Under the pieces are notes generated by a model. That model saw only the letters and a program-made list of their open reading frames with translations, was not told the origin of the DNA and did no database searches. The position numbers and the translations under genes were made by a program. Shown in pieces: positions 1-7,490 of a stretch of DNA of 64,000 bases (positions are counted from its first letter, which is position 1; each line of letters starts with the position of its first letter). The DNA is taken from the NCBI GenBank assembly GCA_965240325.2, contig OZ251235.1, forward strand, positions 1,302,001-1,366,000, read 5' to 3'. The stretch is from Rebecca billardiae RCC1528. Taxonomy: Eukaryota; Protista; Haptophyta.

Positions 1-1022
1 TCTGCTCGGTAAGGTCGCTGGCTGTCTGTGTGGCCCGGCTCCCCGCCTGATCGTTCGGCGGCGCGACGTCATCATCTGTCTTCGCCGCGTCGCCCCTCAT
101 GCAATGGTCTCTTGCTCTCGCCGCTGTCGCGTCAACCCGCACGCTTCATCGTTTGAGATACGCGCTCGCCTCGCGCCCGTGCGTCGCGCGGGTGCGGCGC
201 ACTCTGACGCGTGTCTGCTCGCCGCGCGTCGCGATCGATCGTGCGCGCGCGGCCGCGCAGTCCTCGTCTCTTCTATTTCTAAACGGGATTCATCAACGAC
301 TACTTGGACGCCCGCTCCAACTTATAAACGGGACTCGCGGGCGCCCTCTCGACCTCGGGCAGCAGCTCAACCGCCACGCCGCTGCCAGCGCCCGCTGTCG
401 TTCGTTGCTCAAATCCCAACATAGCTAACCTGATCGTTCCATGATTGATCATTGTGGTCTGTCTACTCCACGACGCCGCGCGCCGCGACCATCCAGCTCC
501 AGAGTCCATTCGTACCCGACGCCTTGTACGAGCCGGGCATGGCGGAGTGGCTAGACGTGGCGTTATAGGGAACCTATAACTGAGTGTCTATGAGCGACGC
601 CAAGAATCCGGCTCGCACGGCATTCCTGCGTTGTCCTGTGCGCACCGCCGCGCGCAGGAGTCCTGGTGCGCTGCCAATCTGGCCCACAGCGGCGCACCTG
701 CAGGACTCGGTTGGTTACCGCTCACATCGGATCGATCAGGCTTCACTCTCGGGGGCGCCATGGGGCTGCTCACGACGAAGGCGCCGAGCTGGGCAAGGGA
801 ATCGCCTGCATCGGGCACTGCCGGGTGCACGCTCCGCTGCAGGAGGTGCACCGCAGTCGCCGCAGCCCCTCTGCTCGGTAAGGTCGCTGGCTGTCTGTGT
901 GGCCCGGCTCCCCGCCTGATCGTTCGGCGGCGCGACGTCATCATCTGTCTTCGCCGCGTCGCCCCTCATGCAATGGTCTCTTGCTCTCGCCGCTGTCGCG
1001 TCAACCCGCACGCTTCATCGTT
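1..1022 (+). repeat. Direct repeat pair (1-153 = 870-1022); probable split-repeat 3' end of a second YR retroelement, joined into the RT of the next element
   Basis: Bases 1-153 recur at 870-1022 (the first copy may extend off-window). A hairpin motif at 555-587 is shared with 5140-5172. The repeat ends immediately before the RT-like QLRLFSGDCFTDD coding sequence. Confidence 0.6.
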
Positions 1023-3827
1023 CAGCTGCGCCTCTTCAGCGGCGACTGCTTCACGGACGACACCAACTTCTCCATCGTCGGCGTGGACAGAACGGTGCGC
1101 TTTCTCTCCGTCTGGCACCGCGTCACCACCAGCCTCGGCCTGCTCATGGCCATCCCTGAGAAGCGCCAGATCGGCCAGTCCGCGCTCTGGCTCGGCTGTG
1201 ACTTTGTCGTCTGCGCTGGCATCCTCGCGGTGCCGCCGGCCAAGATCCTGCGCGCTCTCGTCATCCTGGACGACTTGTTGGCGAGCAGGCCGGTGCCCTT
1301 CTCCACCTTTCGCGCGCTCGTCGGTCTGCTCGAGCACTTCCGCCCGCTCACGCCGGCGAACCGCACGTTCTTCTACGGCCTTTACGCGCACTTCGGCGAG
1401 CTCGGCCGCCACCCCGCGCGGCCGGTGCCCATCACCGCCGCGCTCCGCGCCGCGTGCGCGCGCTGGGCCGAGCTCCTGCGCTCCACCGCGGGCGTGCTCT
1501 TCTCCGACGCGCTGCCGGTCCCCGCGACCCGCCGGCACCTGCCGGCCGCGGCGCCGCCTGCGTTCGTGCTCTTCTCGGACGCCGCCAAGGATGGCGCGCG
1601 CGTGCCGTCGCTGGGGGGCTACGCCCACGGGCTCTGCTGGAGCCTGCCCTTGCGCGCGTCGGACCTCGCTCTGCCGGTGGTCGCGCTCGAGTTCGTCGCG
1701 CTGTTCGCCAACGTGCTGATCTTCGCGCCGCGCATTGCAGGCGCCGTCATCCGGCTGCGCACCGACAGCTCTGTCACCGACCACATCCTCCACAACCTGT
1801 CCGCGCACTCCCCGCTGCTGCAGCACGCGCACCTCGCGCTGCTCGACACCCCGGAATGGCGAGCGATCGCCGACCTGACCGACTCGGAGTTCCTCCTCTC
1901 TGAGATGAACCCGTTGGCGGACGCTGCCAGCCGCGGCGAGTTTGGCGTCCTCGAGCGCCTGTGCGCCCAGCTCGGCCTACGCCCGACGTGGCTCGCGGTG
2001 CCCATCGTGCGCGTGCAGGCGCTGCTTGACGAGCTCGTCGCGCTGCTCTCGCGTCCGCTCGTCCTCGCTGCCGACCCGCCCATGCCGCTGCGCGGTGAGC
2101 GCGTGGGCGAGGCACGCAACCCGGGGCCGGTGTGGCGGCGCCAGCCAGTCGGTGGCGCGCCGCCCGCGGCGGGCGCCCCTCGCAGCGGCGAGGACGCAGC
2201 GGCATCGGCAGCCCGCGAGTCGCGCAGCACAGGATGGCGGCGGCCGCCGCCCGACGCGCTCTCTCGGCAGTCGCGCTCGCGGCCGGATCTGGCCCTCGCG
2301 CCGGCGCAGGCGCCGGCTCTGCGGGCAGGTGCGCTCTGGCGACGCGGTGCGCATCTCTCGCTTAGCCAGCAGCAGCGGCCCCCCGGCGGCGCCGCGCCCT
2401 CGGGTCAGCCGCCGGCGGTCGTGTGCGCGTATGCTGCTAGCGCGCGCTTCGACTTGCGGCCCCTGCCCGTGCGGCTCTCCTCCGACCCGGCTGCGCCCTC
2501 GCCCGACGGTTTGCCGGCGCTGCCGCCGCCGCCGTTCGGAGGCACCTCGCCGCTCGCGCTCCACCCGGCCGAACCGCTGGCGGCGGCGCGCCTCCACGCC
2601 TCGCTCGCGCGCGCCGCGGCGGCGGCGGCGCCAGTCAACACGCAGGCCAAGGACGCGACGGACTGGCGGCGCTGGTTGGCGTACTGCGCGCTGATGGGCA
2701 CGCCGCCGCTGCGCACCGATGCGGCTGCTAACTCGGGCGCGGACTCGGTAGGCTTCCAGCGCGAGAGTTTCCTCCTCGCCTCGTTCCTCATCCACACGTA
2801 CGAGCGCATGCGGCCGCGCCGCCACTCCGACCCGGGCGCGCGCCCGCAGAGCGCCTTCTCTGTCGTGCAGACGGTGCGCCGTGTCCACCGCAACACAGCC
2901 AACATCGAGCTCGTGCGCGCGCCGCTCATCAAGCGCGTGCTCGCGGGGATGCTGCGCGAGTTCGTGCGTCGCCACGGCTCTGAGGCGCTCCTCCCGCAGC
3001 GCAAGGAGCCGCTGGGGGCCCAGCACCTCCGCGACATCTTTGCGCGCGCCGGCGGCGCGCGCGTGGCGGGGCGCATTGTCGACTGGCGTGATCCATTCTG
3101 GATCGGCATGCGGGCGTTGCTCGTCACGCTCTACTTCGGCGCGCTGCGCAAGGCGGAGGTCGCGACTGCGGACAACGACTCGTTTCACGCCGGCTGCCTA
3201 TCGCGGGCGTCGCTCACTTGGCGGCTGGGCGGCGTCCTCGTCGCGATGCCTTCCGCGCAGCAGCTGCGCGCGCGCGCGCGCGGGGATTTCGCAGTGCTTC
3301 GCCCGCCGTGCTCCAAAAGCGACGCCTTTGGCGACGTCTATGGCGCCGATCCGATCTACCTGCCCGTGCTCCCCGGCGATGCGCTCGATCCCGGTGGCGC
3401 TCTCGCCGAGCACGTGCTAGCCGACCCGGTCGCGCAGGGCGCGCAAGCGTCCACGCCGCTCTTCTGCTCGGCGCCAGGCTCGCGCGCGCCGCTGCGGCAC
3501 CAGCTCGTCGACAGCGTGGTCGACGGGCTGCTCTGCGCCATCATGCAGCCAGCTGACGCACGAAAGTACTCGGCGCACAGCTTCCGCATCGGCGCCGCCT
3601 GCGCTCTTCTCTCGGGAGGCGCCTCCAGGGACCTCATCCAGCGCATCTGCCGGTGGCGTTCGGACGAGTGCCCCCGCATCTACGCGCGTCTGACCGCCGA
3701 GATGTACGCGCAGCAAGTGCTTCGGATGGCTTCCTCGCCGGTGCACAGTCGCTTTGCGGCGGACCTCCCGCCCATCGACAACGACGATATCGCCGGCGGC
3801 GTGAGCATACTCCTCGGCTCGCAGTAG
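1023..3827 (+). CDS. RT C-terminal half + RNase H + tyrosine recombinase polyprotein (N-terminally truncated; ORF track 897-3827)
   Basis: RT FTDD (1050-1061) and WLG motif. RNase H acidic motifs FSDA, LEF, RTDS and NPLADAASRG. YR catalytic set GALRKAE, SKSD, AHSFRIG, CRWRS, IYAR. Confidence 0.9.
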   Translation, partial: QLRLFSGDCFTDDTNFSIVGVDRTVRFLSVWHRVTTSLGLLMAIPEKRQIGQSALWLGCDFVVCAGILAVPPAKILRALVILDDLLASRPVPFSTFRALVGLLEHFRPLTPANRTFFYGLYAHFGELGRHPARPVPITAALRAACARWAELLRSTAGVLFSDALPVPATRRHLPAAAPPAFVLFSDAAKDGARVPSLGGYAHGLCWSLPLRASDLALPVVALEFVALFANVLIFAPRIAGAVIRLRTDSSVTDHILHNLSAHSPLLQHAHLALLDTPEWRAIADLTDSEFLLSEMNPLADAASRGEFGVLERLCAQLGLRPTWLAVPIVRVQALLDELVALLSRPLVLAADPPMPLRGERVGEARNPGPVWRRQPVGGAPPAAGAPRSGEDAAASAARESRSTGWRRPPPDALSRQSRSRPDLALAPAQAPALRAGALWRRGAHLSLSQQQRPPGGAAPSGQPPAVVCAYAASARFDLRPLPVRLSSDPAAPSPDGLPALPPPPFGGTSPLALHPAEPLAAARLHASLARAAAAAAPVNTQAKDATDWRRWLAYCALMGTPPLRTDAAANSGADSVGFQRESFLLASFLIHTYERMRPRRHSDPGARPQSAFSVVQTVRRVHRNTANIELVRAPLIKRVLAGMLREFVRRHGSEALLPQRKEPLGAQHLRDIFARAGGARVAGRIVDWRDPFWIGMRALLVTLYFGALRKAEVATADNDSFHAGCLSRASLTWRLGGVLVAMPSAQQLRARARGDFAVLRPPCSKSDAFGDVYGADPIYLPVLPGDALDPGGALAEHVLADPVAQGAQASTPLFCSAPGSRAPLRHQLVDSVVDGLLCAIMQPADARKYSAHSFRIGAACALLSGGASRDLIQRICRWRSDECPRIYARLTAEMYAQQVLRMASSPVHSRFAADLPPIDNDDIAGGVSILLGSQ

Positions 3828-3898
3828 GCCCTGTCGATGCAGGCAGCTTTTCGCTCGTCGTCCTGTCCCGCGGCCGCTGCTGGCATGAGTGTGCAACA

Positions 3899-4590
3899 GG
3901 GGGCAGCCCCATCGCGGCTGCCCCGGGCTTCCAGCCCGACTGACCAGTGGTGATCCGGTTTCGCTGCCTGCGTTTGCAGCGATGGGCAGCCCCTTCGCGG
4001 CTGTCCCGGGCTTCTCAGCCCGACCGGCTGGTGGATGATCCAGTTCCGCAGCATTCATTTGCAGCGGGGGGCAGCCCCATCGCGGCTGTCCCTGGCTTCT
4101 CAGCCCGACTGGCCTGATTCCTTCCGCACACACCTACTGGCTGGCGGGTCGTGTCGTATCGACCGACCAGTGGTGATCCGGTTTCGCAGCATTCGCTTGC
4201 AGCGGGGGGCAGCCCCTTCGCGGCTGTCCCGGGCTTCTCAGCCCGACCGGCTGGTGGATGATCCAGTTCCGCAGCATTCGTTTGCAGCGGGGGGCAGCCC
4301 CATCGCGGCTGTCCCTGGCTTCTCAGCCCGACTGGCCTGATTCCTTCCGCACACACCTACTGGCTGGCGGGTCGTGTCACATCGACCGACCAGTGGTGAT
4401 CCAGTCTCGCTGCATGCGTTTGCAGCGGGGGGCAGCCCCATCGCGGCTGTCCCGGGCTTCTTGGCCCGACCGGCTGGTGGATGATCCAGTTCCGCTGCAT
4501 TCGTTTGCAGAGCGGGGGGCAGTCCCATCGAGGCTGTCCCGGGCTTCTCAGCCCGACTGGCCTGATTCCTTCCGCATACACCTACTGGCC
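3899..4590. repeat. Hairpin-rich higher-order tandem array (about 223-bp period, 7 copies of an approx. 43-bp core)
   Basis: Core GGGGCAGCCCCWTCGCGGCTGYCCCKGGCTTCTCAGCCCGAC at about 3899, 3984, 4067, 4205, 4290, 4428 and 4515. Confidence 0.9.
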
Positions 4591-4877
4591 CGGCGTGGGT
4601 TGTGTGCCAACGCGCTATGCGTGTGCGTGTGCCCTGCACGTGTACAGGTGTCTCAACCCAACGCCCTGGCTAACTCCCCACCCACCAACAAAAAACAAAC
4701 AAAAAAAACACCCCCCCCCCCCAACCAACAAAACGACGCCGCATCGCCGTCGAATTTCTGCTGCTCGCTGCGCTTCCTCATCATTGGCTTCATGACCATG
4801 TCCCCTGTCGCCCACCTCCATCCTGCTGCGTCGTCCTCATCATCACATCAACGGGATCACTCCTGCTCACAAACAAC

Positions 4878-5940
4878 GGGACCTTGCTGCCACGCTGGCG
4901 CAGTCTGCGCGCAGCTTTGGCACCGTCGGCTCAGTCGCTCTTCCCGTTCAGCCAGGGACAAATCCCCACCTTGCGCAAGTATATATATACATCACCATTT
5001 CTGCATGGCGTGTATCATCGGCATTTGCTGCATGCTCACACATGTGCTGCAATACCTGCCCTCGCATGCACATCACGCAGATTGTGGGTGATGTTCGTCC
5101 ATACTCAATGGCGTCGCGTCGCTTTCTATGCAGGAGGACACGTGGCGTTATAACGGAGTTATAACCGAGTGTGTCGGGAGGCTGGAAAGGCGACGCGCAG
5201 CTGGTGGACAAGGGCCGCCATCGTCTTCTAGGTCCTGCAGGTAGTTGTAGCCGATTTCCGGAGCTCATCGGCCACGGAGCTATCCTTTATCATCATCATG
5301 GCGGCCGCTGGTCCTTTCATATCGGCCAACCACACTGGCTCCTCTATAAGTACCCGCTCCGCTCCACTATCCGGCGCTCGAGATCATATCCAAGATCATC
5401 TTAAGTCGGCATGGCAACGTATTACCAAAGTTCATCAAGCAGCCCACCTATCAGAGCTCGCTCGATCATCGGTTACACGACCTTTCCGCTTTCGGGCCAA
5501 GCTGCTCATCTCTAGGCCACCGCTGCTTGCCTGCGCATCGCCATCAGCAAAGCCCGAGGTCTCATCTCCTCTGCGTTCCTTGCTTGTGCTCGTTGCGAAA
5601 CCCGCCATCCGCCCCTGCAGCCTCCGTTGTGGTTGACGACCTTGTCGTCAGGCCTGTGAGTGCTGAGCTTGCCTGAGCCAGGGACCTTGCTGCCACGCTG
5701 GCGCAGTCTGCGCGCAGCTTTGGCACCGTCGGCTCAGTCGCTCTTCCCGTTCAGCCAGGGACAAATCCCCACCATGCGCAAGTATATATATACATCACCA
5801 TTTCTGCATGGCGTGTATCATCGGCATTTGCTGCATGCTCACACATGTGCTGCAATACCTGCCCTCGCATGCACATCACGCAGATTGTGGGTGATGTTCG
5901 TCCATACTCAATGGCGTCGCGTCGCTTTCTATGCAGGAGG

Positions 5941-5944
<4 letters not shown>
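4878..5944 (+). repeat. 264-bp direct repeat (4878-5141 and 5681-5944) separated by a 539-bp segment
   Basis: Near-identical copies running GGGACCTTGCTGCC...GGAGGACAC. Confidence 0.92.

Positions 5945-7490
<1,546 letters not shown>

Follow-up and report, generated by a model that had tools for sequence, protein, structure and literature searches.

How could separate enzymes be obtained from the single reading frame of a retroelement that encodes a reverse transcriptase (RT), a ribonuclease H (RNase H, RH) and a tyrosine recombinase (YR) one after the other? This question is raised by a locus of the haptophyte Rebecca billardiae RCC1528, from which we analyzed a stretch of 64,000 nucleotides (contig OZ251235.1, positions 1,302,001 to 1,366,000, forward strand; hereafter the window). 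The window contains a stop-free frame of 976 amino acids (897..3827, plus strand, stop codon counted), the element-derived portion of which is 1023-3827. A sequence-only reading of this DNA had placed a candidate 2A/StopGo (ribosome-skipping) peptide just past the RNase H, before a disordered linker with three WRR motifs and the YR, and we found the motif in that position of the 976-amino acid frame, at 2088-2129. We observed that this motif is a widespread, conserved and portable peptide module of ~17-20 residues, located at domain junctions of unrelated polyproteins. Its sequence features suggest that it probably acts as a ribosome-skipping separator. We give about an even chance to the further proposal that it represents a third, sequence-distinct 2A class, missed by the profile surveys of 2025-2026, used by picorna- and tombus-like viruses, long interspersed nuclear elements (LINEs) and YR elements of algae and protists, and the first to be reported in the DIRS order.

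In the genome assembly (72 Mb, 41 contigs), the pattern GEAx[NH]PGP gave 21 matches, versus none for the backwards-read control pattern. Nineteen of these matches are in transposons, namely three in subfamily A, seven in subfamily B and one in subfamily C of the element in question, and eight in an unrelated LINE; the other two correspond to short open reading frames (ORFs) and are chance-like. The patterns D[VI]ExNPGP and G[VI]Ex[NH]PGP had no site in the genome. Subfamily A includes the window copy, C23 (L001 about 1492), C33 (L042) and the shorter pieces C12 (L004) and C38 (L012); it carries RVGEARNPGP followed by 565 amino acids of linker and recombinase, and all of its copies are truncated at the 5′ end, each at a different point. 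Subfamily B has seven copies (L005-L011, L039/L043) with ~95% nucleotide identity, and the Logan protein P0001 also belongs to it. These copies show a complete polymerase frame of 1481 amino acids with RVGEASNPGP and an in-frame stop 18 amino acids after the motif, the remaining linker and the entire recombinase (the region matching window 2363-3849) having been removed by one deletion common to all. Since B is a deletion derivative from which this region is missing, we discarded the possibility that subfamily B has its recombinase in an overlapping frame. Two synonymous changes distinguish the motif of A from that of B, together with a single replacement at the variable position −4 (positions are counted from the Gly-Pro bond, the final Pro being +1). 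Subfamily C (C5; 57% amino acid identity) carries GVRFGEATHPGP with a stop 12 amino acids after the motif, and no recombinase was found within 7 kb. In the genome we found no copy with both polymerase and recombinase intact and no complete YR-bearing copy; at the element ends, only the 223-nucleotide tandem repeats located 3′ of the ORF and the variable 5′ truncations were seen. The A set (with recombinase, 5′-truncated) and the B set (complete polymerase, recombinase deleted) are defective in complementary ways.

The unrelated LINE has a single ORF of 2218 amino acids (G000:C5:108457-115110; L037:2457-9110:-) and seven further copies (L017, L022, L025-L027, L029, L033). In this protein, RQGEAKNPGP (amino acids 801-810) is located 11 amino acids before the Exo_endo_phos domain (821-1054), the apurinic/apyrimidinic endonuclease (APE) of the element, and RVT_1 follows at 1531-1814. 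The ~800 residues that precede the motif showed no Pfam match, and a word-index protein search with the region 780-1300 did not retrieve any match. Two copies (L037, L041) retain very long open frames, and for this reason the LINE may have been recently active.

Relatives of the element were collected with an exhaustive phmmer search, which yielded 1941 proteins, 355 of them at E ≤ 1e-30. Since the RNase H-recombinase junction is spanned by one protein in 81 of the best 150 relatives, this clade normally has RT-RH-YR as a single frame. The sequence-only reading had set the uninterrupted frame against the usual arrangement of the DIRS order, in which the YR occupies a separate or overlapping ORF; the single frame holds, the contrast does not extend to this clade, and the RT of the window copy is incomplete, since it starts at motif C. 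The expectation that the motif would be conserved in related elements was borne out, as R[IVF]GEAx[NH]PGP occurs in distant relatives where RNase H and recombinase meet. In five of them (P0015, P0113, P0138, P0028 and P0114; 31-39% identity) the form [GA]VR[IFV]GEAS[NH]PGP stands in an otherwise unconserved linker. Near-canonical 2A-like sequences were observed at the same junction in P0080, where LIALCGDVHPHPGP appears twice, flanking a segment of 176 amino acids, and in P0092 (GERIHPHPGP). Wherever the RNase H motif N..AD..SR could be located, the motif site ends 61-70 amino acids after it; in the window this distance is 65 amino acids, and the motif lies within a disordered stretch. In P0015 (~1000-1067), a segment of ~35 amino acids that ends in the motif is tandemly duplicated, with copy 1 degenerate (GVRIGEASNEGP) and copy 2 intact (GVRFGEASHPGP).

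A degenerate nucleotide pattern encoding R-[IVFLM]-G-E-A-x-[NH]-P-G-P was used to scan viral and metagenomic sequences; because this pattern required R at −9 and a hydrophobic residue at −8, it misses the RQGEAK form of the LINE type. In IMG/VR, 51 contigs matched, compared with three for the backwards control. These matches comprise 61 instances, all in frame, mostly in long ORFs of short contigs and up to three per ORF; one further match, on a 56-kb contig, is chance-like. The motif-bearing ORFs carry a picorna-like RdRP_1 or a tombus-like RdRP_3 domain. In the virus L047, an RNA-dependent RNA polymerase (RdRp; 137-520) is followed by the motif (799) and then by the coat protein (1086-1217), and the relatives of this virus show the motif at the homologous place plus additional copies, NSFGEASNPGP and VRYGEADNPGP being among the variants. 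A protein search with the viral ORF matched only relatives without names. The extended motif is nearly identical in the retroelement protein P0113 (VRPKDKAVRFGEASHPGP) and the RNA virus L050 (IRPRDKAVRFGEAKNPGP). Long RNA-virus ORFs with Lys at −3, often as RIGEALKPGP, were also noted (L050, L110, L115, L127, L134, L138, L151, L155), together with rarer ones with Arg or Asp at this position (L153, L154; L149); if the motif skips, these variants bear on how far the Asn position can vary.

In metagenomes, at least 120 contigs with at least 122 in-frame instances were detected, and the ORFs sampled were mostly those of non-LTR (long terminal repeat) retrotransposons. In several metagenomic LINEs the motif is placed directly before the APE (L253, motif 1943 and APE 1966; L321, motif 1317 and APE 1343). 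The LINE L258 (Ga0126338_10006842, minus strand) contains in one frame, and in this order, a GEA-type site, an OTU protease domain, one stop codon, the sequence REGVEPNPGP, the APE and the RT. REGVEPNPGP resembles the class B 2A peptides described below and is located 7 amino acids before the APE; two kinds of putative separator are thus present in one element. When 119 metagenomic motif-bearing ORFs were compared by BLAST with the element and the LINE, only three weak RT matches were obtained, which do not correspond to close relatives, and none of the ORFs had the recombinase of the element. The motif was located at three kinds of junction: RNase H and YR, an uncharacterized N-terminal part and APE, and RdRp and coat. 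The enrichment at domain boundaries that had been proposed as a check was found in this form, with the motif before the APE of unrelated LINEs and between RdRp and coat, or repeated, in RNA-virus polyproteins. Two further groups of metagenomic ORFs were noted. LINE-like ORFs with the motif ~30-120 residues from the frame start (L218, L233, L247, L264, L273, L275, L283, L285, L291, L302) have a transmembrane-like hydrophobic stretch directly before it. Long ORFs of another family (L234, L237, L239, L282, L292, L319, L323) have the form ..C(S/A)(R/K)....R[IV]GEA.NPGP and then a C-terminal part whose length hardly varies (322-327 amino acids), for which no Pfam match was found.

The extended consensus of the motif is ..[P/G/W]-[L/Y]-x-G-x-R-[I/V/F]-G-E-A-[S/K/x]-[N/H]-P-G|P. 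Every synonymous codon is used at each fixed position, and therefore selection acts on the peptide and not on the nucleotides. Among 134 non-redundant instances, position −8 is occupied by I (66), V (45), F (16), L (6) or M (1), L and M having been allowed by the pattern; the ratio of N to H at −3 is 79:55, and Gly is present at −11 in 65 instances. The relative entropy from −10 to −16 was 0.69, 1.18, 0.24, 0.64, 0.49, 0.43 and 0.33, with a null 95% point of 0.17. It was above the null from −16 to +1, did not exceed 0.21 from +2 to +13, and was at baseline beyond −20 and from +2. The footprint is consequently upstream only, with ~16-20 residues, and ends at the Gly-Pro bond, which is what would be expected from a nascent-chain signal read inside the ribosome. 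The window instance fits this footprint at positions that the pattern did not impose, with P at −14 (just upstream of 2088-2129), L at −13 and G at −11. When position −3 was left free in IMG/VR, the unique in-frame instances showed N (35), H (17), K (8) and, in long viral ORFs, R or D in a few cases; the remainder were chance-like and from phage contigs. When +1 was left free, Pro was found in 41 unique instances; the only real-looking non-Pro residues were those of L170 (H) and L210 (F), and nearly all other non-Pro matches were again chance-like and from phage contigs.

The domains that flank the motif were identified by different means. The RT-RNase H was recognized by a fold search, because Pfam detected neither domain in the window ORF or in the full-length copies (RVT_1 matches 1 of 26 relatives). 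An AlphaFold (AF2) model of the RT-RH part of P0001 (residues 400-1035), a full-length copy with 96% identity, had a predicted local distance difference test score (pLDDT) of 83, and with this model Foldseek retrieved the RT-RNase H of Moloney murine leukemia virus, HERV-K, HIV-1 and cauliflower mosaic virus (E 7e-13 to 1e-10). In a PDB profile search, the RNase H of Ty3 matched the RNase H domain (E 0.015). In the model the motif comes after the final helix, and the 16 residues before the motif core are disordered (pLDDT ~30). As judged from this model, the RT-RNase H is of the retroviral/LTR type that characterizes the DIRS order, and the window copy keeps it from motif C onward. Regarding the recombinase, Phage_integrase matched the window frame with E 2.8e-5, under the Pfam gathering score, and 13 of 26 relatives; the Cre/Xer profiles matched the recombinase part with E 0.002-0.1. 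The window frame has the signature R...HxxR...[H/W]...Y of a tyrosine recombinase, which in the DIRS order stands instead of a DDE integrase. From these domains and their order, on which the assignment rests, it follows that the element is a tyrosine-recombinase retroelement with the Ngaro/VIPER-like order RT-RH then YR and no methyltransferase between them. It resembles the Ngaro/VIPER-type members in this succession (R, HxxR, W and Y in the YR) and in being without integrase or protease. It differs from the order in that one frame encodes both RT-RH and YR, as it does in the majority of the 81 related proteins, and in an RT too divergent for RVT_1.

We compared the motif with the known 2A classes. 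Rao et al. 2025 described a Leu-rich class A with GDVExNPGP and a class B with W...EEGIEP[N/H]PGP, in which N and H are equally likely, both were tested as active, and skipping occurs at Gly-Pro (PMC12338488). A 2026 preprint added a ‘class X’, in which the class A core carries single substitutions, and reported 2A in LINE-like and other RT elements. A second preprint of that year is a screen of 4218 eukaryotic NPGP peptides; five GEA variants that we looked for in the supplements searched did not appear there. In the literature searched, no paper described the GEA motif strings, and none combined tyrosine recombinase, retrotransposon and NPGP. Read as a sequence, the motif has the C-terminal NPG|P with Pro at +1 of 2A/StopGo peptides, as well as their ~18-22 residues of upstream constraint with none downstream, and it is in frame between modules, outside folded domains. 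It is similar to class A (foot-and-mouth disease virus F2A, P2A, T2A, E2A) in the NPG|P end with a near-invariant Pro +1, in the ~18-20 residues of upstream-only constraint, in its location in single frames between modules of RNA-virus polyproteins or retrotransposons, sometimes several per polyprotein, and in that all real-looking instances came from eukaryotic elements or RNA viruses of the eukaryote type. In contrast, its core is R-[IVF]-G-E-A-x, while that of class A is G-D-[VI]-E-x; Glu occupies −6 instead of −5, and Asp is absent. The motif also has an invariant Arg −9 and a frequent Gly −11, as a rule lacks the Leu-rich helix, and commonly shows His at −3 (41%), which is rare in class A.

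With class B, the motif shares Gly −7, a similar balance between N and H at −3, and occurrence in TSAR protists, dinoflagellate-type LINEs and unclassified metagenomic viruses; in L258 both kinds of site share one frame. It differs in the absence of the invariant Trp −15 and of Pro −4, in the invariant Arg −9 and Ala −5, and in the order around Gly −7, which is opposite ([IVF]-G-E versus E-G-[IV]). Retrotransposon 2A-like sequences upstream of the APE, in which N to H lowers activity, were reported by Odon et al. 2013 for non-LTR elements (L1Tc, Ingi, CR1, L2, Rex1, Crack; PMC3708506). Our motif is likewise a few residues upstream of the APE, a likeness that rests on the LINE of this genome and the metagenomic L253 and L321; unlike it, those elements carry a D(V/I)ExNPGP core, and none has been reported in a tyrosine-recombinase retroelement in the papers searched.

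If the motif acts as proposed, the nascent ...GEAxNPG chain in the exit tunnel and peptidyl-transferase center of the eukaryotic ribosome would prevent formation of the bond with the incoming prolyl-tRNA, the upstream product would be released, and translation would resume from Pro. In an intact element, one frame would then give rise to an RT-RNase H protein ending in ...GEARNPG and a recombinase starting with PVWRR.., which would bear a long, basic and disordered N-terminal tail. Skipping, the formation of two products and a possible role of the ratio between them are what we infer from the motif and its placement.

Several observations weigh against this interpretation. The window motif, V-G-E-A-R-N-P-G-P, fits neither the class A core (G/H)D(V/I)ExNPGP nor its relaxed form (D/G/C/N)(V/I)ExNPGP, and positions −8 to −4 are [IVF]-G-E-A-x in every instance, contrary to that core. 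The class B pattern, an invariant Trp ~15 residues upstream and EG[IV]EP[N/H]PGP, is not found either: W stands at −14 in just 13 of the 134 instances, position −5 is Ala, and S or K predominates at −4. Skipping by one class B peptide was lost in tests when Asn −3 was replaced by Ala (PMC12338488); K, R or D occupies this position, at which the motif is more tolerant than class A, in ~15% of the plausible viral instances, and the weaker forms in P0014 (GEADKPGP) and P0082 (GDAAVPGP) have K and V there. In P0106 the motif is located C-terminal of the recombinase. Only ~7 of the 81 junction-spanning relatives have a GEA-type motif, and thus it is not needed for a working recombinase; most linkers of the relatives contain no PGP motif of any kind. 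In a tree of the recombinase domain, six of the seven GEA-type rows fall, in a scattered and patchy manner, within one well-supported clade of 45 rows that includes the window; as many of the rows marked ‘none’ are fragments in which the linker is missing, the tree does not distinguish one origin followed by losses from several gains. Subfamilies B and C keep the motif shortly before their stops in spite of having no recombinase, so that release of this enzyme is not the sole reason for its presence. Finally, the window copy is a 5′-truncated relic from which ~670 N-terminal polymerase residues are gone, and it is probably no longer functional.

Among the alternatives to skipping, we consider the most likely to be a short linear docking or cleavage motif, recognized post-translationally by a conserved host protein or protease and placed in disordered linkers by viruses and transposons, although it appears unlikely to us. 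It would agree with the location of the motif, always in disordered and variable segments, with the two or three repeats seen in some viral polyproteins, as host-binding motifs can have, with the tolerance of K, R or D at −3, and with the persistence of the motif near the C-terminus of recombinase-less derivatives. However, ten near-invariant residues plus six to seven biased positions are long for a docking motif, and conservation is restricted to the upstream side and stops exactly at the Pro after Gly. The final four residues are also those of all known 2A peptides, N and H alternate as in class B, and the favored places, before the APE of LINEs and between RdRp and coat, coincide with the ones that known 2A peptides occupy (PMC3708506).

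We regard as improbable that the motif is a conserved tail of the RT-RNase H module, such as a contact or regulatory segment, and that its likeness to LINE and viral sequences reflects convergence on a turn rich in Gly and Pro. The fixed distance of 61-70 amino acids from the RNase H motif, the retention of the motif despite deletion of the recombinase and its absence from most fused relatives could be explained in this way; nevertheless, an identical string of 10-12 residues with the same upstream biases (P0113 versus the viral L050) occurs in proteins without an adjoining RT-RH, the segment is predicted to be disordered, and P0080 has the 2A-like GDVHPHPGP at the same place. The least probable explanation, which we hardly credit, is a chance NPGP without function in a frame rich in G+C, Pro and Gly. 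The NPGP-coding pattern alone is indeed unremarkable in the window (two matches versus 0.72 expected, with two or more in 18 of 100 shuffles), and the window copy is truncated and probably inactive. This explanation is contradicted by the counts, that is, the 21 genome matches against none in the control and the hundreds of instances elsewhere, by the few differences between the A and B motifs, of which the only replacement is at the variable −4, and by the conservation of the motif in relatives of 31-57% identity.

2A peptides are standard tools for co-expression and a model for nascent-chain control of the ribosome. To our knowledge, a single sequence class was recognized until 2025, when a second was defined, and the surveys of 2026 sought only near-variants of these two. 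If the GEA motif is a ribosome-skipping separator, it would constitute a third class with a different core (Glu shifted by one position, invariant Arg −9 and Ala −5) and would represent another way to hold the peptidyl-transferase center non-reactive. It would also provide new parts, possibly well suited to algae and protists, lead to a new annotation of many polyproteins of environmental RNA viruses and transposons, and explain how separate enzymes are obtained from the single RT-RH-YR frame of tyrosine-recombinase retroelements.

Coordinates of the element-derived features and flanking repeats in the window
Feature	Position	Strand	Details
Motif, LRGERVGEARNPGP	2088-2129	+	CTG CGC GGT GAG CGC GTG GGC GAG GCA CGC AAC CCG GGG CCG
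Motif core RVGEARNPGP	2100-2129	+	NPGP = 2118-2129
Proposed skipped bond (predicted)	Gly 2124-2126 / Pro 2127-2129	+	
RT, C-terminal part	1023..1560	+	motif C FTDD 1050-1061, then thumb/connection
RNase H domain	1561..1940	+	SDAAKDG 1575-1595, LEFVA 1686-1700, RTDSS 1758-1772, NPLADAASRG 1908-1937
Helical C-terminal extension of the RT-RH module, conserved	1941..2087	+	L..LC..LG..P..L.VP; then the disordered segment starts
A/P/R-rich disordered linker, 177 amino acids	2130..2660	+	WRR at 2133, 2235, 2337
Tyrosine recombinase	2661..3824	+	R in GALRKAE 3138-3158, HxxR in HSFRIG 3576-3593, W in CRWRS 3648-3662, Tyr in IYARL 3678-3692
Exact direct repeat of 153 nucleotides, copy 1	1..153	+	
Exact direct repeat of 153 nucleotides, copy 2	870..1022	+	not element-derived; abuts the 5′ truncation at 1023
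Three tandem repeats of 223 nucleotides, G+C-rich hairpin units	3937..4605	+	element 3′ region, common to other copies

Homology of the window copy to the other copies begins at 1023 with QLRLFSGDCFTDD, which corresponds to RT motif C; motifs A and B are absent, according to the comparison with the RT family consensus (DDxxDxF, LGFG..SN.AQR, YTDD). The sequence of the 177-amino acid linker is not conserved among the relatives. The two copies of the 153-nucleotide repeat are 869 nucleotides apart, and the end of copy 2 coincides with the truncation point of the element. The edges of this repeat are splice-site-like (start ...ctcg|gtaagg, end ...ttcag|); we considered that the repeat might be an intron (gtaagg...ttcag) between an upstream exon and the element, and rejected this reading because, on inspection by eye, the junction is out of frame. 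In subfamily C (L044:2590-2760; G000:C5 ~3000590-3000760), RFGEATHPGP and the stop are directly followed by a long inverted repeat, GGTAAGATGACGAAGCGTTTTACCG...CGGTAAAACGCTTCGTC.TCTTACC, which recalls the hairpin units of the 223-nucleotide tandem repeats of the window. At the end of the 3′ region of the element, the window contains a perfect palindrome (5927-6094) made by a long microsatellite of (AC)n/(ACAT)n/(AT)n units.

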